From positions 47,678,001 to 47,742,000 of the forward strand of contig NC_135758.1 of assembly GCF_052425735.1 (NCBI RefSeq): DNA of 64,000 nt, read 5' to 3'. Below the pieces are notes generated by a model. The model ran no database searches, was not told the origin of the DNA, and saw nothing but the letters and a program-made list of their open reading frames with translations. Of the stretch, positions 12,468 through 62,808 are shown piece by piece. The DNA comes from Oculina patagonica. Its lineage: Eukaryota. Within the stretch, counting starts at the first letter, position 1. Each line of letters starts with the position of its first letter. Both the position numbers and the translations under genes were made by a program.

Positions 12468-14222
12468 ATGAATACTGAAAGACCTGTTCAACAATATTTT
12501 AGCCCTTATACATTCAATGGAGGGTAAGTAAACGTTAAGTTTCAAGTTTTATTTGCAGTGTAACATTGTGATCCCCATGAGTCAGCATATGACTAAGTTG
12601 TCAAACAGAACCTTGTGCAGATCTTTCTATTCTATGATATTTTTTTTCCTGTTTAGAAATGTGGAATACTTTATATATGGAATGATAGACTGTGTATCAT
12701 CCCGAACAATGCTTTAAGAGAAATATATAATAAGTTATATATTAAATTAACTGTAATAAAACCTACATCATCACTACATGGTGAGAACTCCTGTTGAAGA
12801 TCAGACCAGACTATACTGCATTATCCTCCCTTCAGTGGCTCTCTCTATGATATCTCTGATGTGAAATGAAATTCTGTGATCATCAACACAGTATAAAGAC
12901 ATAGAAACTGTAGATATATATTTTTGTAAACTGTTGCTTTATGTTGCTGTTTTTGAGTAGACACAGAAATGACGGGCCGGGCATGGCAGAAGTGTAGCAA
13001 GTAACATTAGCAACAGACTTGTTGTTTGTTGCTTGTTGATTTAATTATTGAAATTATGCAAAGTTGCTGATGCTTAATTTATTAGGACTAAAAAATGCTA
13101 AGTGCTAATGCTTAATTCATTACTAGGTACATGTAATTATATTTCATTTTGTTTTCCTCTTTAGGACTGTACTAGCTATTGCAGGAGAGGATTTCTCTGT
13201 CATTGCTGCAGATACACGTTTAAGTCAGGGATTTGCCATTCACACTAGAGACAGCCCCAAGACTTATAAACTGTAAGTGAGACTTGCTTGTAAAGGTCAT
13301 CTCTGTTTTCTGTTGTGAAATTATGTTAATCAAAAATAAAAATTTTCCAGATTATGGTATTGCTATCGTGCCATACAAAAGTTACAGGGTTATTGTATCA
13401 ATTTCTTGTGTTATAGACATTAAAGCTCTGAGCATAATTGTTGAACTCCCAAGTGTTGTCAAAACAGGAATGCTTTTCTCTGGGGTTTCCCTGTCTTCCT
13501 CTGATGTGTTGTTGATTTGACTGAGGAGGCAGGCTATATAATATATGTGGAATTATACACTCGTGTTAGTACACTCCCAGATCTGTCTATTTGCTTTACA
13601 AAAACTTTCTTGTTTTGATGTCACAGCTTAACTGACCCCACTTTGCGTGGTTTGTAAACAACCAGTAGTGAAATTTCTCGACTTAGACAACTAAAACATG
13701 GTGAAGTCTACAACAAAATTTGATTTTCCTCAATGTTCACATCAGGATCCCACACAGATTCTATCAAGCAAATAAAAAAATCTGTTATGTACACTTTAAT
13801 TAATAGAAACAAAATCTAAGTTGAGTAAGAATGTGATTTCCATGGACACGCATTTTAAGTTTCAATTTTTGTTTGCCTTTAGAACCAATTCAACTGTTCT
13901 TGGATGTGCTGGTTTTCATGGGGATTGCCTTACTCTGACCAAACTTATCACAGCAAGGCTTCAGGTGTGCTGACTTAATTAACTTGTAAATTAGGATTGC
14001 TGTATTTATTATCCAGGTTCACAACATGTCTTGAAGTCAATCATAAGTGCTGTAGGCTTTTTTAGGTTTTATTTTGGCTTTCCCACACTGTTTTCTCTGT
14101 TATCTTTCATTGTTTGTCCATCACAAGTGAAGGAGATGTGCTTCATTGTACACCTCAGTTATTATGAATGGTCTGCTAACATTTCACAATACCTTCAATA
14201 TGTTTTTTTGAACAACACTCAG

Positions 14223-14253
<31 letters not shown>

Positions 14254-15486
14254 CATACATACATACATACTTTATTGCATAGCTCCCCCTTGGGGGCTCT
14301 TCCGCCATACAGAAATTAAAAAGATAAAAGATAAAAATATTTACAATAAAGAAGAAAAAAGAAAAAAAAAATCAGAAAAAAAGGGGTATAGTTGAAATAA
14401 AAAATTCGCAATTAAAATTATATACATTACAGTTAAAGGGGCATTTACAAATTTATAATATGTTTAAAAATTCTCTTTTTAAAAAGGTTCAGGTCATTTG
14501 TCTCTCTAATGTTCTTAGGCAAGTTATTAAAGAGCTTCGCTCCACGGTAGGCAAAAGATCTCTGCCCTGTCTTTAGTCTACACTTCGGCAGCTCAAGATC
14601 GTTTTTCTGCCTGGTGTTACGTGTGTGTGTTATTGAACGTCGCTGAAAACGAAGATAGCTTGGAGTGGCATTATTTAAACATTTCCTTACCATTACTAGG
14701 TCGTTTCATAATTATATGTTTCCAGAAATAGGAAATTAAGTTCAGGGTTTGATGGATTTTGTTTTGTGGGTGAAAGAAGGGTGTGGCCACTTGATGTGCT
14801 TATGTTCATCATAAATTACTTACTTTCTCAACTTCCAGGAAAAATAACTTGGTCAATATTTTTCCAATTAATTTGATTTTTTTTGCCACCAAAATTGCCT
14901 TGGAAAGATCTGCATTTTGAAAGCATAAAATTGTTCCTCCCCCCTATTTGTGACTTGATTGACCACCCCTTTAACTTTTGAAACTTTTTTCCTGATACGT
15001 ATGTGAGATGCAACATAACTGAAATTAACCACAACAGTAAGAGCTGCACAATAAGCTATAGTTTTAGGGTGTACCTACTATACAGGGAGATACACACATT
15101 TTTAAAACTTTTTCTTTTTCATTTTACAGCAAGGCGCCCAAAAGTGTGACCACCTTTAATTAATTCACATTCTTTCGTGCAACCACCATCCAGTCAGAAG
15201 CCAAGGACAAGTTCCAGTTGACTTCTGATTGGATTAGATCTGCACAGAAGAATGTGAATAAATTATCACACTTTTGGGCGCCTTGCTGTAAAGCAATTTC
15301 TTTTAAGGCCATAACTTTCTTATTAATTGTTGACATTTTTTATGAACTATTCTGATCATTACCATTCAAATGGTGTATCATACATGGTCAACCAGTTAAT
15401 ATTTATTGATTTAGGAAAAGAGACCAGTTGCGTCTGGGCTTAAAGGGTTAATAATAAAGCCTCTGCCTGCAGAAAACTATTGAGTA

Positions 15487-15524
<38 letters not shown>

Positions 15525-17253
15525 TGATGATGATGATGATAATGACGGTTTAATGATGATTCCACGAGGTGGCTCTAAACCCATTGTACATTTGTTTTAG
15601 ATGTATGAACATGAACATGGAAGTAAAATGAGGTATGGATATATACATGAATCATTATTTTTATGTTTAGAACTAGTCTAGGAACAATATTGTCTGTTAT
15701 TTATTTATCAGTCTTTGCAAATAATACTGGCTAGCATCAGGCCTCTATGTGCATTGCAGGCCTATAGTTCTAGCCAATAATTAGCTTATTATTTGGGCTA
15801 TATTAAAACTTTCTAACTTTATACTAACAGTTTTACCTATTTATACACTTTTATTTTTTAGCTCACCAGCCATTGCTCAGATGTTGTCAACTGTTTTGTA
15901 CTATCGGCGATTTTTCCCTTACTATACATACAATATCCTGGCTGGGTTGGACAATGAAGGTAATACATGCTGCTCACATGCAATGTTTATCGTAAATAGA
16001 CCTGCAATCCTCCATTTTGCTCTGACAAAAACAAAACCAAAAAAGCGACAAACAGACCTCAGACAGAACGACTTAATTTGACTAACAATAGTCAGATCGA
16101 AACTGTCTGGACAATTATTTTTGACTAACTTTACATGAGTCTTACAGCCAATAACATTGCAGCTTAACTGACCAATCAGCTTCAATGGATGAGACTTAAA
16201 AATCATTAAATGACAACAACTTTCAACTTGACTCTGAAGATGACTTCACCCAGGTTGTCAAATTTCAGCCGCCAACTACAGTTCTTTTGAGAGCCACTCT
16301 CATCCGGACTGTGACACTACACAAACTACTGATACTCCTGGGTTCAAACTATTTACTAAACAAGTTAATGATGATTGTTTGTTTGCTTCAGGTAAAGGAT
16401 GTGTGTATAGTTTTGACCCAGTGGGCTCTTATGAAAGAGAGACTTACAGAGCTGGTGGCTCAGCATCAGCACTTCTACAACCACTACTTGACAATCAGGT
16501 AAACAATGGGATGAACCAGTACCAAATAGTTATACATGTAGTAATGGGATGAATTGGGCCAGCGATGCATGCAATAAAACGATGAATTTCTCCTCTCAAT
16601 TGACCTTCCCTACCACTGTCAGTTTTAGTTAATAATGCTCAATTTTCTTGACCTTAGATGAAAACTTTTCCAATGCGAACAAAAGCGACAGAAGACTAAC
16701 AAAACCACAAAAGAATGCGAGAAAAAGTAAATGAAAAAAAGGACAAAAAAAGCCTGACAGTAATTGTCTATATTTCTCTTGTTCAAATTTTCCTTTTGTG
16801 CGCAAGCCCCAAACAAAATATTGACAAACTTGCCTCAGACTAAAAAGAAATGTTACTTTTTCTCTTTAAAAGATGTTTTGGACAGTTTGGCTGCAATCTT
16901 TCAAGAAAAAGGAAAGAAAAAGGCGTGTTTATTGTCCAATTGCCGTTTTGGAGGAAAATCCTATCAGAAACTTAAATCGGATGAAAATTAAACAAAAGAC
17001 AACACATGGTATTTGTTATTAGTTACTATTTTTTCTATTAATCTGGTTACCTTGTTTGATTTTGAAGATTGGATTTAAAAACCAACAAGGGGTAACAGAG
17101 GTGCCTTTGACTAAAGATAAAGCAGTTTTCCTGGTAAAAGATGTTTTTACAGCTGCTGCTGAGCGAGATATCTACACTGGAGATGCAGTCATTATTAGTG
17201 TTATCACAAAAGATGGCGTCACAGAAGAAGCTTTCCCGCTTAGAAGAGATTAA
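12468..17253 (+). CDS. PSMB1: Proteasome subunit beta type-1 (7 exons)
   Basis: Exons 12468-12523, 13165-13272, 13883-13964, 15601-15632, 15862-15959, 16392-16498, 17068-17253. Motifs [63 protein letters not shown] and C-terminal LRRD. Confidence 0.97.
14224..14705 (-). mobile_element. 5'-truncated CR1/L2-clade LINE 3' end with (TATG)n tail
   Basis: ORF 14445-14693 (PSYL...HTRNTR...[28 protein letters not shown]...L..FKK) is a typical ORF2 C-terminus. It is followed by a stem-loop, AATAAA and a (TATG)n microsatellite tail. Confidence 0.88.
15125..15290. mobile_element. MITE (TA-flanked)
   Basis: TACAGCAAGGCGCCCAAAAGTGTGA ... TCACACTTTTGGGCGCCTTGCTGTA. Confidence 0.85.
16090..16358 (+). mobile_element. 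Degenerate retrozyme/Penelope-derived repeat with eroded hammerhead core
   Basis: TGACT-CTGAAGA-TGACTTCACCCAGGTTGTC-AAATTTC-AGCCG (16229-16272) followed by ACTACTGATACTCCTGGGTTCAAAC. The GAAAC/GTC core is mutated. Confidence 0.6.
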
Positions 17254-54478: not shown

Positions 54479-54773
54479 TTAGAGCGGTTTTCACTTTAGT
54501 GTCGAAAGTAATTCCCATTTCTTTGCATTACTACGCTTTATAGTGATTGAGTGATTGGTTTAAAAAAACTCCCGCCAATTTCCATTGATGACTCCACAAC
54601 CAAAACCAATCGTGTCTCGCACGCGCACGTTTTCCGCCCGCGCTTTCCCCGGGCTACACGTATTTGCTTCGAGTTTTGCTGTTTGGTTTACTAAATTGTT
54701 TGCCTCCTTTGTAATTGATCAGAGTGATTAATTTGGTTGTGATTTTATGACACTCAACTGAAAACTGCTCTAA
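54479..54773. mobile_element. MITE
   Basis: TTAGAGCGGTTTTCA ... TGAAAACTGCTCTAA termini. Confidence 0.7.
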
Positions 54774-55352
54774 GACATATGTATTTAACTATTTCGAAAG
54801 CCTGCGTTCCTATGTAAAGATACAGAAAGATATTATCACAGATCTAAGAACTGCTGCGTTGTCTTTCGAGCCGGGGAAGTAAATTCCCATCCGTATAAAG
54901 ACTTTTACGCCGAAGTTTTTGACTTCGTGCTTCACTGCTTTCTTCACATAACCCTAAACATACAAATTAAAATCGTCTCACGCAGTCCGTAAATCCACAC
55001 ATTTGATTTTCCAAGTTGACCGGGTGGCCCTCTTCCATCCCTGGTACGAGGCCAAGAAAACTGGGTTCCACTAGGCCGACAGGACCTGGAAACGAGATAC
55101 TTTGTGCCAGCCTCGTCCCCAGGCCATACCGCGCTATGCGAGTGAGCGGAGGAGGACTGGAACCGAGCGCGATAGCGCGAGGCCTGGCACAAAATGGCAA
55201 AAAAGTCCCAGTTTAGCGAGAAAAAGTCCCAGATATAGTTCGACGAAAATATACGTTTTTCTGCGAGGAAAAGAAAATATTTCTGGTTCATGAGAAAACT
55301 GCATCCCTTTTGAACATTTGTGGACTATTTTAGATGGCGGAGACAAACTGTA

Positions 55353-55980
55353 ATGCCGTTTTTTCCTGCCTTGCAGAATGGTATTGGTCGTATTAGAGTT
55401 AAGAAAATTATTCTGTTATTTATATTGTTTTCGTTCACTACTCGTCGTGATACATGGGTCTACATGTATCTAGAAGTTCTTTGTGGTAAGCAAATTACGT
55501 TCGCCAGGTACTAGTAACTGTGGTAGTTTTATTTAAACCTAAAAGGCGTCGATCTCAATTTTTATAGACCTAGGGTCGGGATTTTCGACCTTTGTTATTT
55601 ACAAATTTATGTGCGAAAACAAAGAAACAATTCAGCTTACTTGAGAGAAGAGGGCTGATCCCCCGATGCATGTAAGCTTGTCATTGATTACCTGTAAATT
55701 TTTATTTCGCTTTTTAGAGAAAAAAAATCTAACTCTCGTAAACCAAAACTTTATTTGATCTTGTTGTAGCCTGTCTTTTTCTTGTATACTCTGGCTCATT
55801 TCATTAGCAGGAGATGTTAATCCAAATCCTGGGCCATGTTCAGGTAATATATAACAAGTATGCTTCAATCATTTTCGTCAATTCAATGAGCTTATTAAAT
55901 AAAAAATACAGCTGGTCATGCTTATTGCAGATTCCGAGTGTGAATTGATATCATTTCTATTGTGTAGCACCACTAAATAG
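55353..55980 (+). pseudogene. Decayed spliced ORF encoding a 2A/StopGo-like peptide (WLISLAGDVNPNPGP)
   Basis: Putative exons 55353-55485, 55718-55843, 55931-55980 are phase-compatible. There is one in-frame TGA at 55756. The GDVNPNPGP motif is at 55810-55836. Confidence 0.55.
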
Positions 55981-56221
55981 CCAACAGTTCTTGTCAGCCC
56001 AAAAGGTGTGGAAATTTATTTCAATTTCCCTCAAATGCAGAGTTAGCATTTCAGCTGAAGTTTATATATTTTGCTGCCAATTTCGTGTGCACTGCTTTCC
56101 CCTCTAGACAAGGTACATACTGCATCATTGTAGACACAGCTTGTTTAACAAAGTATGATTCTTCTGCTATTCTCTCTGACATTTACTTGCAAAGAAACAC
56201 ATAAACACAATATATATACTA

Positions 56222-56810
56222 ACTGAGCTAAGCAAATACATATGGAAGCTCAAAGAGGAGGACAAGGATTTTAATGTTACCTGGAAAGTTCTCTCTAAGG
56301 CCAAACCGTACACGAACACTTTAAAACGTTGTGACCAGTGTACTACTGAGAAATTGTTTCTAATTTGTTGGCCACATATGGCAACTCTTAATAAGCGGAA
56401 CGAGCTTATTTCTACGTGTAGGCACAGGCGAAAATTTATTTTAAAGTTTAATTTTAAGGTTTAATTTAGAATTTCATACACTAATTTTAGCGCGAGCAAT
56501 TAGTGATGCTTTTCAAGCTCTGATATGACAACTGAGCACGCGCGCGTGCTCTACAGTGTAAAATTTAAATTGTAACGGTTAACAGTGCGATCAAAACAAT
56601 GATGTAGACTGTAACAAACTAGTGTACATGCTGTTTAACTGAAGAGTGGGTCACCTTTATGGTGGCCTACAAAACTGATTTGTAACGGTTAACAGTGCGA
56701 TCAAAACAATGATGTAGACTGTAACAAACTAGTGTACATGCTGTTTAACTGAAGAGTGGGTCACCTTTATGGTGGCCTACAAAACAGATTTGTACTGAAT
56801 GGTAGTCAAC
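56222..56810 (+). mobile_element. Penelope-like retroelement 3' fragment (GIY-YIG C-terminus plus pseudo-LTR with 110-bp tandem duplication)
   Basis: 56222-56464 reads TELSKYIWKLKEEDKDFNVTWKVLSKAKPYTNTLKRCDQCTTEKLFLICWPHMATLNKRNELISTCRHRRKFIL, typical of a PLE endonuclease end. Followed by a direct repeat 56571-56680/56681-56790. Confidence 0.85.
56740..56803 (+). ncRNA. Degenerate minimal type I hammerhead ribozyme (second partial copy at 56630-56684)
   Basis: Stem I gctgttta/tgaatggt, core CTGAAGA, stem II GTGGGTCACC-tttat-GGTGGCCTAC, AAAAC in place of GAAAC, near-palindromic stem III ACAGATTTGT, GTA cleavage triplet. Confidence 0.6.
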
Positions 56811-57985
56811 TGAATTTGAGTTGTTCATTAGAAAAAAGATTATACTGTGTTTATATGTTTATTTACAAATAAATTAAAATATCAAAATATATAATGTTTA
56901 AATATTGTTTGAACCGCTCCAGAAAAGCTGGTTACTGGGGCTTTTAGACCAGCTTCTTTTTAATTTGTGACCCCCATTCTGCATTCTTGATAGCCCAAAA
57001 ATATTTGTATTTTTCCTCACATGGGTACATTGACTTTTTATCCCATTCCTTAAACTACCACCTTTTTAACTCCTACTTGCAGAGATATTAAACTGAGCTT
57101 GACTGACACACACACACACACACACATAAACACAGTACAGTATACAAAAGTATTTACATGTATTCAACTCTTGCAATACATACTAAAACTAGTAGTAATT
57201 GGAATTTAGGGGAGTGCATTTGGTAGGGTGGGGTGATTTGGGGGAGGAGGCAGTGGAAAGTGTTATATTATGTTTTCATATTCTCTTGATATTTGAGGTC
57301 TGTCCATAGAAAATGTATGACATTGCCAGCTGATTAAACCTGATCTGCTTGTACCAACCCATCTTTCTAAAGCATAAGAGAAGAATAAAGCCTTTTGATT
57401 GATTGTGCCAAGCTAAGTGGCTAAAGGTCTTTAATGAATCCAAATAGAATACATTGTATATCTAGAAGATACTCTGGATAATGTTTGTATAGTAACAATA
57501 TAAATATAACATTAACTAACAGTAACATACGACTTTTAAACTGAAATGTAGCCATTCTAAACATTTTGATACCAGTCCATTAGGAACAGTTTTTTGTTTC
57601 CTTACAATCATAATCTTGTCAATGCTTAGTGGTCGAAGGGAATTTGATATGTTATAGAGTCTCACAAGTCTGAAGTTCACAAGAGAGAAGTTGAATCTGT
57701 TAAGCAGCTGAGTTGACACATCACAACTCGGTATCGTCACCTAGGCGAATTGCAGCGTTTGTTTCCCAGAAAACAAACCACTACACAGCTTTCTAATTTT
57801 CTGATAAGTAGCTTTAGTCATATATTTTGCTACTGATACTTCGAATAAATAGTTACAACTTCACTTACCTTGGAGAAAACTGCGAAAAATATTCGAAAAA
57901 AGCGAAGGCAAAGGAACAAAGAAAGCACACACGAAAGCACAGTTGAAAGTACTGAAGGATTATCAGCTTTGAGCCTTTTATCTTA

Positions 57986-58333
57986 TCACCGCTGTTGTTG
58001 TTGTGTCAGCGAGAAGCAAAAATACTCATCATACGACTTTCCACGAACGGCCACTATTCTATCTCCGTTCACCAACAGAGAAATCGATCGATAGAGACAG
58101 CTCCCATCGCCAGTTACAGTTAGTGGAACATATTCTTCTTCAAGCTCTTTAGATGGTACAATTTGTTGCGCATAAAAATCGACATTTAATGTTTCTACCT
58201 TAAATAAAAAATCTCCAATTACTTCACGAGTTTGCTGGCAGACATGGATGAAGGAATCCCAGCCAAATTCTGACGCGTTTTTAAGTTCTTCAAGAAGTTG
58301 ACTGAAGTTCAATCGTTGGACAGCCTCCGCCAT
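57986..58333 (-). pseudogene. Truncated vertnin-like / OTU-like cysteine protease ORF
   Basis: MAEAVQRL...DFYAQQIVP...YVPLTVTGDGSCLYRSISLLVNGD carries the OTU catalytic Cys-loop GDGxCLYRS. It ends before any His-loop and lies inside the TIR element. Confidence 0.65.
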
Positions 58334-58512
58334 ATTGGATTTGCCGTTTATTGCCAGGCGTCCTAGGCGAACTTTCCCGACAAGCTTGACGGGTGACGTC
58401 ACATCCAAATTCGCCGGGGACGACTGGGGACGAGGCTGACTTTGTGCGCTTGTACTCAAAACGTTACCGCTGGCATCTGAAGAACACGAAAACTTTTGAA
58501 AACACCAGAAGG

Positions 58513-61500
58513 ATGAGGCGAAGTAAGCGTTTAGAGGCGAAAAAAGCGGGGATATTTTCCGAAACTGAAGGAAGCAGTCAAGAAGAAACTGCAGATATCG
58601 AAAGTCTTGATCTAGAAGCCTTAGTTTCAAAAGCTTATGATTACATTAAACAAAAAATTGCAACGAATGAGCAAGAACAAGTTGATGATCAAGATGTCTC
58701 CAGTGAAAGAATTGCGAGCTCGAGCTCACAAGAAGAAGAAGAAGAGCCTGGAAAAGCAGAGGAATTTATAACTCTTCCAACTGAATTCAAAAGAAAATTA
58801 AAAGAGTAAGTCGATTTTGAGATATTTGAATAGATTTTGCAAATTAAGTTTAAGTCTTAGAGAAGAGATCAAAAAGGCAATAAGCCCACGTGTTTATACA
58901 TCTAAGCTTAAGCTTAATTTGCTTTTATTCAAGTACACACTGGTACCAGTTATTTAACAGTTGTCCTGCAAAATAGTACAGAATATCACCTGATACCTTA
59001 ATAACTGATGAGGCCTTCAGCCAAGTGGGCTAAAATCAGATGATATTCACAAGAATGAGCAGGATAATTGTTTTATTATTCAACAAATTGCCAGCGAATA
59101 ATATTTTACTGCTTAAAATACTGTGGTTATGCAGTGTTTTGCAAGACTTTGGAAATCTTGGCAACCTATGCATATTTAACAATTATTTCACGATTGGGGT
59201 TGGATATGATCTCATAAATAATTGTTTTATTAAAAACGTCCAAACAATTGCAGTAATTTAGCTCCCCGGTTGTTTCCATTGACACGTATCAACTGCATTT
59301 TGTGGACAATGGTATATGAGCTCATATATCATTGCCTGTTAACCAATCAAAATGCAGGATTTGCAATATACCATTGCTAGTTTTTAATAATGCAGGATAT
59401 GTGTTACTGTACCTATGGATGATTGATAACTTACACTGGAAAGATGAATGTTTATTTGTTTTTCTCATGGTGGAAAAGCTTTGAGGCATTGATCGTGACG
59501 TTTCGTCTGCTATACTGCTAGTCTTCATCAGGTGATGAAGACTGGCAGTATATTGATTGTTTAGGTATCGCTATTTGTAGCATGTTGGTTCACTGCAATT
59601 CTGAGCCCAGTTAACTAATACTCTCACTGACCCCGTCTCAAATTTACAGGAACAGCATAACCAAAGTTAAAACTATATAACAGGACTGAATCTTTGTTTG
59701 TTGTAGGCCTTCACAACTCTCATCTGAGCTGCAAGTGGGCATGAACACAGAGGACTTATATCTCAAGTTTGACAAAACCAGCTTCAAACCTGCTATAACT
59801 AGTAGAAACTTTGATGATGTTGCTGGTAATAACAAAGAGGTAAACAATTCAAGAGTTTCAGACTTGAGAAATTAAATTTTGGTGCTTCTAGGCAAAAGAA
59901 TTATCTTTGGTGACTCATCCAGTGACTGTCTAGTGGAGTAAATGTCATTAATGTCAATCTGCTGTTCTTTGTCATTTTGTTACCTAAAATTCCATGTATC
60001 TCTCCTGAATTTCATGACCTTATATATACTAGTTATGCAATGCTTTCGAGTGGTATACTATGGAATATCCCACGAGTCACTTGTATTTTATCGGTATACA
60101 CACAAGCCTTTAGGCGAGTGTGTATATACCAAGAAAATACAAGTGACAAGTGGGATATATCATAGTATACCACGAGAAAGTGTTGTGTAACTATTTTATA
60201 CCATGCCATAGAAAATACGCTTACTAAATTTCGTCGAGAATACAATCGCAGCGCACGATGGGAAGGTTGGGTTGAATACCGTTGAATATACAACGGCTTT
60301 CCTGTATTCTGATTGGCTGTATTTTCTATGGCATGGTATAAAGCACAATCTATTACTTTTGATCTCCTGAGCTGAGGATGATGGATCATAAAGTTTTTTG
60401 GATTAAAATGAGACTGCAAAGATTTGACTAAGAATATTTATTTATAACTGTCCATGAGTTATCCTAATTCTCCAAAATTTCCAGGTTTTTTTTTTTTAAA
60501 TTTTTAAATTCCTTTGTAGTTTCTGGAATTTTCATGATCTGTCTGAACTGTGAATGTTATCAGATTGCGTATTGATTGGATTTTATTTTTATTCTTGACC
60601 TTTATTTTCTTGTTTACCTTGGTCCCTATATTGAGATTTTCAGATCTGCAAAAGAGTGGTTAATAGAAAGGAGTACTTTGACTCTTATTGTCTCTAGGAT
60701 AAAAAAAAAATTAAAAAAAATTACCTTTATCTATACACAGTTGTATTTTTAAAAAAGCTAGAAGCTTGTGGGACCGTTTATCCCTGATCAAAATATTGGA
60801 AGTGTTGGTTTTTTGTGGAGGAAGGAAAACCAGAAAACCTGGAAAAAACTCTGTGTAAAGAGAAGAATCAACAACAAACCCAACCCACTTATGACGCGGG
60901 GTCTGGGATTTGAACTTGGGACACATTGTTGGGAGGGCGAGTTCTCTCACCCTGCTCCCCAGGATTGTTTGAACAGTAACATTGCAATTTTTGTCCTTGT
61001 TTCTTTCAGCTGATGAAACGAAGTGTCATTACAAGTGACTTTGAAAAGAGACACTCTGTTCCCCCAATGCATGTTTCACAGTATGCTAACAGGAAACAAA
61101 AGAAGGTAATGTTCAAAAGCCAATCAAGTTAAATTTTACATGTTTGTGTTATCAGTTGTTAACTGTTGCTGACCTTAAATCCCTCACAAATACTAAAAGA
61201 ACGCCGACATTTTAAAATTGCACTGAATTGAACTTTGAAAACAGGTCTTTACTAGGAGATAAGATGCTCATTATCAGTGTTGTGACATATAATTAATTTT
61301 GTTGACATGTAATGAGATGTCTTCATGGATATTTCAGAAAACCAAAGAGGAGTCTGCAGGGCCAATGTGGTTCAACCTTCCTGCAACTCAAATAACACCA
61401 GAAATTGAACAGGACATGAAGATAATAAAGATGCGAAATATCTTGGACAGAAAACGGCATTACAAGAAGAATGACTCTTCTGCATTACCTAAATATTTCC

Positions 61501-62808
61501 AGGTATGTTGAAAATTCAATTTTGGTTTATCAGGTTATATTCTGGGCCAGGTTCAAAGCATGGTCAAGCTAATCCAGGATTAGTGCGAATTTTGATTTCA
61601 GATTTTTAACATTTTAGTGAGGTTTTTATGTTTACATGTCCTGCCCTCCAGTTTTAATGTTGACTAATCTCAAACTATGCAAAACATTCGCAGTAAGAAC
61701 ACTCATAAAAAAGAAATTGAATCCTTGGTCAACTTTTAATCCTGGCTTAGTGTTAATCGGCTTTCGAACAACCCCTGCCCTGGATTGCTTTTCAGGTTCC
61801 CAGTCAATACATAGTAAGCACTGAAAACCCTCTCCACACAACACATCACAAGTTGCAAAAAAAACTGTACTATCATCAACCCTACTAATAAATTGCTGTA
61901 TTGTTTAGATTGGTACTGTGGTGGAGGGTTCTGCAGAATTCTACACTTCTCGTATTCCTAAACGCCAACGAAAAAATAACATGATTGATGAGTTACTTTC
62001 AGATGCTGAATTTAGAAGGTATGTCCCATTTGTGACCCGCATACAAACAAAATGCTATTTCAAATTACTGGTATACTGTCCATTGTTATACAGTCAACTC
62101 TCTCTTAACGTACACGTCTATAAGACAGACATCTCTTTAAGACAGACACCTGGTGACGGTTTCATCCCTGCCATTTTTCAGTCATTTTACTGTAACTAAA
62201 CTCCCTTTAAGACGGACACCTTTCTAAGACAGACAGTTGGAGCTGGTCCCGACAACATCCGTTTTAGAGAGAGTTGACTGTATCTCTCATTGCTAGAATA
62301 TGGACAGCCTTCGACTTTCCTCCTTTGAAAAAGACAACATTTTGGTGTGCTACATACTGTAAGATAAAGGTTGTTCATGCCCTTTACAAAAATTTTCCTT
62401 TCTTACCCACAAAAGCTTACAAGTGTAAAATATTTCACCTTTTGAGAGAAACTAAATGACACACCTTTGAACCTTGTCAGCCACTTGGTTTGGTGTAATG
62501 AACAATAACTCAAAATCAAGCTGATAAATTTCTTTCTTCTTAGCAACTGTTTGCTTAACATTGTATTGATTACATTAGGAGAAAGTAGATGGTGATCACC
62601 ATTGGAAAACTTGTTGCTCTTAGATGCAAGGCTGAATAATATTCGTGATGTAATTTCCGTAATCAATTTGGTGATGCATTGTGTTTGCTTCTGTTACAGA
62701 TACAACAAGAAAAAATACTTAGAAATACAGGCTGCAAAGCAAAGTGGAAAGAAAGGATTTCACAAAAAGAAAATGAACAAAAGAAAACCAACTGCAACAA
62801 GGACTTAG
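58513..62808 (+). CDS. DNTTIP2: Deoxynucleotidyltransferase terminal-interacting protein 2 / Fcf2 pre-rRNA processing factor (6 exons)
   Basis: Exons 58513-58805, 59707-59839, 61010-61105, 61338-61502, 61909-62018, 62700-62808. Fcf2 domain AGPMWFNLPATQITPEIEQDMKIIKMRNILDRKRHYKK...PKYFQIGTVVEGSAEFYTSRIPKRQRKNNMIDELLSD. Confidence 0.92.
60750..60960 (-). mobile_element. tRNA-derived SINE in DNTTIP2 intron
   Basis: Minus strand shows a B-box GTTCAAATCCC, then GTGGGTTGGGTTTGTTGTTGATTCT...GGTTTTCC. Confidence 0.7.
62091..62280. mobile_element. Tc1/mariner-type MITE (TA TSD)
   Basis: TA|CAGTCAACTCTCTCT ... AGAGAGAGTTGACTG|TA with AAGACGGACA repeats. Confidence 0.88.

Follow-up and report, generated by a model that had tools for sequence, protein, structure and literature searches.

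The DNA analysed here is a 64,000-nt stretch of the genome of Oculina patagonica (the window; contig NC_135758.1 of assembly GCF_052425735.1, positions 47,678,001 to 47,742,000 of the forward strand), and our subject is the transposable element at positions 55108-58438 of it. Perfect 15-bp terminal inverted repeats (TIRs) and a perfect 9-bp target-site duplication (TSD) bound this element, and we read both at 55099-55122 and 58424-58447, just as an earlier note made from the sequence alone had described them. The earlier note took the element for an internally deleted DNA transposon in which no transposase can be recognised and which carries two convergent cargo genes, one with a 2A-like peptide and one for an OTU protease. 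The first part of that description is borne out by our results, as both arms are homologous to those of a 14,260-bp element from Porites evermanni, and Pfam scans of open reading frames (ORFs) found no transposase in the window element or in any other copy of its family that we examined. The second part holds for the relatives that have complete genes, whereas what the window copy has kept of either gene is a dead relic. We conclude that the window element is very probably a non-autonomous, internal-deletion copy of a helicase-bearing autonomous DNA transposon of ~14 kb that belongs to AcademH or next to it. The parts of the element on which this conclusion draws are the following.

55099..55107, no strand: left copy of the TSD, ACTTTGTGC, the same as 58439-58447; the flanks differ outside these 9 bp
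55108..55122, + strand: left 15-bp TIR, CAGCCTCGTCCCCAG, with 240 exact matches in the genome and 0 for the control
55108..55333, + strand: left subterminal region, with two AAAAAGTCCCAG repeats at 55200-55211 and 55221-55232
55108..56225, + strand: left arm, colinear with the first ~1.2 kb of the full-length P. evermanni element
55334..55380, + strand: relic exon 1 of the transposase-side gene, 47 nt (opening with ATG, 15 codons plus 2 nt), then a GT donor
55770..55843, + strand: relic exon 2, 74 nt, with the 2A-like peptide ...LAGDVNPNPG/P; acceptor AG and donor GT conserved
57989..58333, - strand: truncated OTU-like ORF of 115 codons, with its stop codon at 57986-57988
58061..58438, - strand: right arm, homologous to relatives
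58424..58438, - strand: right 15-bp TIR, the exact complement of CAGCCTCGTCCCCAG
58439..58447, no strand: right copy of the TSD, ACTTTGTGC

The 15-mer CAGCCTCGTCCCCAG occurs 121 times in forward and 119 times in reverse orientation in the 529-Mb genome, and since its reversed control gave 0 and 0 occurrences, the TIRs are far more numerous than chance would allow. We tallied the pairing of TIRs among the first 100 of the 240 genomic occurrences, and these yielded 38 pairs, with 24 TIRs left unpaired. Nine of the pairs span 94-155 bp, the size of miniature inverted-repeat transposable elements (MITEs), one spans 576 bp, 23 span 2.76-3.6 kb and five span 4-7.3 kb. A 9-bp TSD was present in all 28 copies for which both flanks were readable (27 perfect, one matching at 8 of 9 positions); these duplications differ in sequence from copy to copy and never include a tenth duplicated base. 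The ends that the earlier note proposed to pair across the genome are thus indeed partners, and the notion that two unrelated solo ends happen to lie around ordinary DNA is refuted, because these ends recur as pairs dozens of times with unchanged spacing and with a separate TSD for each pair; we regard its probability as negligible. The target sites show a weak palindromic preference, with A at -4 and T at +12 each found at 11 of 17 paired sites (the TSD being positions 0-8).

More than 148 candidate genomic matches were found for each 230-bp end, and the 40 scored per end are 97-100% identical. Compared pair by pair, the copies differ by a median of 1.1% over the left 650 bp and 2.2% over the right 650 bp; the sample favours the best matches. 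In public sequencing runs that carry four organism labels the element is present at many different flanks, and internally deleted forms with joined termini are seen there as well. This is a young non-autonomous cut-and-paste family of roughly 120 copies, recently active and with MITE-size derivatives of 94-155 bp, and its youth makes it a candidate marker for insertion polymorphism in O. patagonica.

Complete and partial relatives

The relative that is most complete was reached through a helicase match and lies on a contig of P. evermanni (GCA_942486025.1; L085:6321-20580). It has a perfect 9-bp TSD, GTTCCATGG, and TIRs identical to those of the window element at 14 of 15 positions. Its right ~370 bp are 73% identical to the right arm of the window element (73-74% when the relative L087, described below, is included), and its left ~1-1.2 kb is colinear with the left arm of the window family at ~60% identity, or 78% in the terminal 225 bp. 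In a sensitive blastn comparison positions 1-943 of the window element align with 1-986 of the P. evermanni element, and positions 1-1173 of the 2.8-kb form, which is the commonest form of the family, align with 1-1195, both at ~60% identity. Inward from its right end the P. evermanni element has an OTU gene (28.4 bits, which passes the Pfam cutoff) with a later exon that holds an NHFVPL His motif, and after this gene a 652-aa RecQ ORF with DEAD, Helicase_C, RecQ_Zn_bind and RQC domains. On the opposite strand, inward from the left end, are exons that end in a 755-aa ORF with ankyrin repeats and DUF6589. The window element has both of its termini in common with this coding-competent element, lacks its genes, down to any helicase or DUF6589 remnant, and has TSDs of its own, which is the make-up of a deletion derivative. 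The broader value of this comparison lies in the intact 14-kb element type that it brings to light, with convergent DUF6589/ankyrin and OTU plus RecQ gene sets and 9-bp TSDs.

Two further OTU relatives, L072 and L073, come from an ENA assembly, and in both a RecQ-like DEAD helicase follows the OTU gene on the same strand. An identical 15-bp TIR lies 72 bp upstream of the OTU start in L072; in L073, where the corresponding start has a mutated ATG, the TIR upstream of it matches at 14 of 15 positions. L087 (7428-14526) is a 7.1-kb derivative with both exact TIRs, the OTU gene and part of the helicase. It has no TSD, its flanking 9-mers being GGGATACAC and GGGGAGGCT, and these unlike flanks could have arisen when two copies recombined or when flanking sequence was deleted. 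A further locus, L086, holds a helicase fragment only. In L072 we also observed a Buster-type hAT transposase (13716-16276, - strand; DUF4371 and Dimer_Tnp_hAT) directly where the helicase ORF breaks off, probably a nested insertion.

The O. patagonica genome has an element of comparable build at G000:C3:9403607-9414844 (L083 and L084). It is 11,238 bp long, has a perfect 9-bp TSD, CCCCAGTCT, and imperfect TIRs, CTGCCTCCTCCTCAG and CTGCCTCGTACCCAG, the right one matching the window TIR at 13 of 15 positions, and it encodes a convergent ankyrin plus DUF6589 gene and RecQ helicase, without an OTU gene. A second copy lies on contig C1358, and we consider this element a candidate autonomous AcademH-like element of the genome. 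At least 54 DUF6589 matches were found in the assembly, many of them convergent with RecQ-like helicases (frames of 615-647 codons, in several identical copies). Two such DUF6589 plus RecQ loci, L081 and L082, show no recognisable TIRs within their 10-kb pieces.

Could the window element instead be a Mutator-like or Pack-MULE-type element that has captured host fragments, namely the OTU piece and the 2A-bearing exon? The earlier note had named Mutator/MuDR alongside AcademH as possible superfamilies, and there is a good deal of likeness, as a 9-bp TSD is typical of MuDR, and convergent inward genes, abundant non-autonomous derivatives and internal gene fragments are all features of Mutator-like elements (MULEs), Pack-MULEs and protease-carrying MULEs included. 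Gene fragments and unrelated filler do lie inside the window element, and the genome does contain MULE domains. However, the OTU piece and the 2A-bearing exon each align in order with an arm of a full-length element equipped with OTU, RecQ and DUF6589 genes of its own, and they are therefore relics of the element itself and not captures. Pfam scans found no MULE domain in the seven long ORFs (103-755 aa) of the P. evermanni element, whose helicase suggests another affinity, or in any copy of the window family, and none of the 18 PF10551 MULE matches in the genome lies near the TIRs listed. A Mutator origin is consequently very improbable, and of the two superfamilies suggested it is AcademH that fits, with its RecQ helicase and 9-bp TSD.

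Relics of two genes in the arms

What is left, in the window element, of the genes of such a parent? The 115-codon ORF of the right arm was correctly likened to OTU proteases as far as its Cys loop goes: GDGSCLYRS aligns to the start of the Pfam profile and to the GDGxC(L/F)FR loop of its relatives. Pfam gave OTU (PF02338) an E value of 0.18 (12.8 bits against a cutoff of 23.3) and C65 (otubain) one of 0.035, likewise below the cutoff, and both profiles touch the ORF at the Cys loop only. A search of 1.8 billion representative proteins found just 28 relatives. Those that are complete measure 190-300 aa and have their Cys loop at around residue 90, with a His region further on, and the window ORF matches residues ~7-97 only of a 195-aa relative (P0004), the homology ending at about codon 92-97. 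No match to the later OTU exon was found in the window element, and with the full-length OTU protein as probe no copy in the O. patagonica assembly went past residue ~90-107 of 195, so the His part is missing from every copy in the genome. As the homology stops past the Cys loop and the His part is absent, the ORF is a truncated 5′ third of an OTU gene, and judged by this sequence it cannot be an active protease. The 2.8-kb form is further damaged, having an 8-bp duplication right after the Cys loop that shifts the frame.

DNA transposons are known to carry OTU as an accessory domain (PMC5751038), and the OTU-like subfamily found here is also that of the OTU-bearing Helitrons: P0026, which shares 31% identity with the window ORF, heads a Helitron_like_N plus PIF1 protein. 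Helitrons differ in having no TIRs, no TSDs and a Rep/PIF1 helicase, whereas the window family and its relatives have TIRs, 9-bp TSDs and RecQ. As an aside, the genome holds at least 145 OTU-domain matches, many of them within open frames of 2,000-2,500 codons; because this distant OTU relative heads a gene of Helitron type, these frames probably encode Helitron-type proteins.

In the left arm, the 2A-like sequence LAGDVNPNPGP (55804-55836) lies in a frame of 29-31 codons that has no ATG and is bounded by AG and GT. That this frame and the short ATG-bearing frame before it are exons, as the earlier note had supposed, is supported by the conservation of their borders in relatives. Exon 1 of L087 agrees with that of the window family in its length (47 nt), its ATG, its phase and the position of its donor, and this donor is kept in L085 and L073 as well, where the ATG is lost. 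Exon 2 lies at the same distance from the left end in the relatives; in P. evermanni it reads LAGDIHPNPGP, its acceptor and donor are unchanged and its 6-nt indel stays in frame, and L087 adds a third lineage with LAGDVHRNPGP. The motif is thus DVNPNPGP in the window family versus D(V/I)HxNPGP in the relatives, and the tight pattern GD[VI]xxNPGP would be expected ~0.3 times per genome by chance. All 59 genomic matches to the 2A-like peptide are copies of the window family, in frames of 27-59 codons, and none of the 59 is a long ORF from which the peptide could have come. Given the retained splice sites, the in-frame indel and the occurrence in three lineages, we regard exon 2 as a genuine coding relic of the transposase-side unit and not as a capture. 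Exons 1 and 2 together predict a leader of ~40 residues that ends in NPG/P, and from its position and orientation we infer that this leader would be spliced to the DUF6589 exons.

The leader departs from the canonical 2A core, D(V/I)ExNPG/P, in having Asn (window family) or His (relatives) where the essential Glu should be. Mutational scanning of P2A and F2A found a single replacement of E14 that reached the activity threshold, E14H in P2A (10.64898/2026.09.24.754024), and a 2A-like sequence with Ser in place of Glu tested inactive (PMC3708506). The window version is probably dead, and no recognisable coding sequence follows its frame; the conserved variant of the relatives has His, which is the one substitution reported to be tolerated in P2A. 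Its closest parallels are the 2A-like sequences of APE-type retrotransposons without long terminal repeats (non-LTR) and of NOD-like receptors (NLRs), in which the first ~40 residues likewise contain a hydrophobic tract and then G-D-(V/I)-x-x-N-P-G-P (PMC3708506, PMC4981915); here, by contrast, a DNA transposon is the carrier, two short exons share the coding of the peptide and the Glu is replaced.

We are led to a tentative proposal, which we hold to be possible rather than probable: that in a coral AcademH-like lineage the transposase-side transcript opens with a two-exon, His-variant StopGo/2A-like leader, ...LAGD(V/I)HxNPG/P, while an OTU gene stands in tandem with RecQ on the other unit, that the leader would release or throttle the transposase co-translationally, and that the window copy would be a decayed trace of this arrangement. 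In the surveys of eukaryotic 2A-like sequences that we consulted, non-LTR retrotransposons and NLR genes are the only contexts named; a conserved 2A-like leader on a DNA transposon appears to be unreported. If true, the proposal would give cut-and-paste transposons their first 2A-type recoding signal. An active leader would mean that 2A recoding extends beyond RNA viruses, non-LTR retrotransposons and NLR genes, and DNA transposons would offer a natural test bed for non-canonical StopGo cores.

The two cargo genes of the earlier note are, then, real in full-length relatives, for the 2A and OTU segments are both present in the P. evermanni element, and they are dead in the window copy. Its further suggestion, that 2A and OTU protease are coupled in one polyprotein-processing system, does not hold, because in the intact element the 2A exon is part of the transposase-side transcription unit, and the OTU gene part of the helicase-side unit opposite to it. 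To the idea that the window copy itself expresses both a 2A-processed polyprotein and an OTU deubiquitinase we give very little credence. It has in its favour inward-facing ATGs behind conserved subterminal sequence, which includes a TGACGTCA box at 58394-58401, upstream of the OTU ATG, and an OTU-fragment ORF that stays open for 115 codons. Yet this ORF is without the two thirds of the domain that bear the His, and it is frameshifted in the 2.8-kb subfamily, and the 2A frame of 29-31 codons has nothing recognisable downstream and Asn at the essential Glu (PMC3708506).

The left subterminal region is 75-82% identical to the left ends of L073, L085 and L087, its AAAAAGTCCCAG repeats are also kept in L073, and it is likely to comprise transposase-binding and promoter sequence, while the TGACGTCA box of the right arm may have a promoter role. 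The earlier note had further pointed to ATGGCGGAG at 55334 (+) and 58333 (-), facing inward in both arms. The motif is there as stated; its right occurrence is the conserved start of the OTU-like ORF and its left one the start of the 47-nt exon conserved in a relative, and the sharing of this 9-mer by the two arms is not significant by itself.

Placement among helicase-bearing transposons

According to papers by Kojima (PMC10045372, PMC10799480), elements of AcademH, a lineage of the Academ superfamily, make TSDs of 9 or 10 bp and encode a helicase with DEAD and Helicase_C domains. In PMC10045372, PMC9587614 and PMC10799480 the only DDE groups named as having a RecQ helicase are AcademH, KolobokH and one red-algal Kolobok, and of AcademH and KolobokH only AcademH makes TSDs of 9-10 bp (PMC9587614, PMC10045372). 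The TSDs described above are in agreement with this, those of the P. evermanni and 11,238-bp O. patagonica elements included, and a superfamily-2 helicase with DEAD and Helicase_C is present in L085, L072 and L073. The combination of 15-bp TIRs, 9-bp TSDs and helicase places the lineage in, or next to, AcademH. The likeness extends to TIR-bounded cut-and-paste movement and to occurrence in animals (PMC10045372, PMC10799480). The differences are that the candidate transposase of the relatives is a DUF6589 plus ankyrin protein, that the window copy has neither transposase nor helicase, and that the relatives have an OTU-like gene upstream of the helicase and a 2A-like leader, neither of which we found reported for Academ.

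Where, then, is the transposase? The ankyrin plus DUF6589 gene is the only candidate. DUF6589 is reported to be enriched in rust fungi, in which Academ is most abundant, and Academ had no Pfam model in 2017 (PMC5751038); we find DUF6589 to be common in cnidarians as well. On these circumstantial grounds the DUF6589 protein may be an Academ-type DDE transposase. An alternative is that the DUF6589 transposase defines a separate, undescribed group of helicase-bearing transposons, DDE or other, outside AcademH, with the window copy as its non-autonomous derivative. DUF6589 has no annotated function, and the structural results below would suit such a group; on the other hand, the restriction of RecQ and of 9-10-bp TSDs among the named DDE superfamilies points to AcademH, and the presence of DUF6589 in rust fungi (PMC5751038) and cnidarians matches the distribution of AcademH in animals and fungi. 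We consider a separate group unlikely, though worth keeping in view.

Several observations weigh against a deletion derivative of an AcademH-like parent, or against parts of that reading. An AlphaFold model of a 647-aa DUF6589 homologue from Exaiptasia (predicted local distance difference test, pLDDT, 67) is all-helical where it is confident and has a C2H2 finger, and a Foldseek search of the model against PDB gave no match (best E = 0.25). No public sequencing run recorded as RNA turned up, and the four runs examined cover the element evenly and contain no joint with GT..AG or CT..AC ends; they behave as DNA and are uninformative on splicing. Among the first 100 of the 240 TIRs no autonomous partner with the window TIRs was found in the O. 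patagonica assembly, no DUF6589 or helicase match lies within TIR pairs on contigs C1-C5, and the closest helicases in the assembly, with that of the relatives as probe, are generic RecQ-like proteins of 32-43% identity. The ~1.2-kb filler in the interior of the window element has no counterpart in any relative, and no haplotig with an empty site was found in the assembly.

Derivation from an AcademH-like parent, which we prefer, would run as follows. In the parent, of ~14 kb, a two-exon 2A-like leader would read inward from the left TIR and continue into the ankyrin plus DUF6589 gene, the presumed DDE transposase, while on the right side, in convergent orientation, the OTU-like cysteine-protease gene and then a complete RecQ helicase would read inward from the right TIR. 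An internal deletion of ~12.7 kb would have given rise to the window family, which also gained filler of ~1.2 kb that is unrelated to the parent; the window copy contains in addition a 624-bp piece of a different repeat. Of the parent, the window copy retains only the cis-acting ends and dead relics, namely the leader exons and the first ~95 OTU codons, and it could move only with transposase supplied in trans. Such elements offer a concrete way to assign transposase function to the Pfam family DUF6589, and a means of tracing AcademH, so far poorly known, further in cnidarians.

Filler DNA and insertion site

Between the arms of the window copy, and downstream of its right TSD, lie the following features.

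56180-56461, + strand: open frame of 94 codons, a GIY-YIG-family fragment in and around the 624-bp segment
56217..56840, + strand: 624-bp segment that only the 3.3-kb subfamily has, the 2.8-kb form being without it
56841..58060, no strand: ~1.2-kb filler that matches no relative and gives no domain signal
58513-58806, 61299-61508 and 61918-62030, + strand: putative exons of the downstream host gene, Fcf2-type

The window copy belongs to the 3.3-kb subfamily, which is 94-95% identical to the 2.8-kb form, and the form without the 624-bp segment appears in the public runs as a joint 56216->56841. The segment contains two 110-bp tandem units at 56561-56780. The identity of the 94-codon frame to the C-terminal region of proteins of 130-165 aa, one of them with PF01541 (GIY-YIG), reaches 79%, and the frame is a piece of another repeat family that sits exactly at the junction of left arm and filler. 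Thirteen interior ORF pieces gave no Pfam signal except for the OTU-like ORF. The longer copies of the family (7.3, 7.2, 4.6, 4.3, 4.0, 3.7, 3.6 and 3.5 kb) were considered as possible autonomous copies and ruled out, their extra length being nested DNA only: one Copia-type gag-pol and otherwise ORF-poor sequence. The Copia-type gag-pol has an open frame of 1,234 codons and is nested at ~825 of the copy at G000:C4:20939037-20946310 (L061), which retains a perfect TSD.

The right TSD of the window copy ends 65 bp upstream of an ATG at 58513 (+) that opens an acidic exon. Exons further along the + strand, at 61299-61508 and from 61918 onward, encode an Fcf2 pre-rRNA-processing domain (DNTTIP2-like), and the three exons, the acidic one included, would make up one Fcf2-type gene. 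With the TSD so close to the putative start codon, the insertion falls within the promoter or 5′-untranslated region of this gene. Taken alone, the window copy is unremarkable: it is a non-autonomous transposon that was mobile recently, is now dead and lies in the promoter region of a housekeeping gene. Apart from a short common repeat, the DNA to the left of the insertion is single-copy. A high-copy repeat of ~70-90 bp lies in this flank at window 54705-54790, and a first look gave 498 candidates for it, 83-90% identical.

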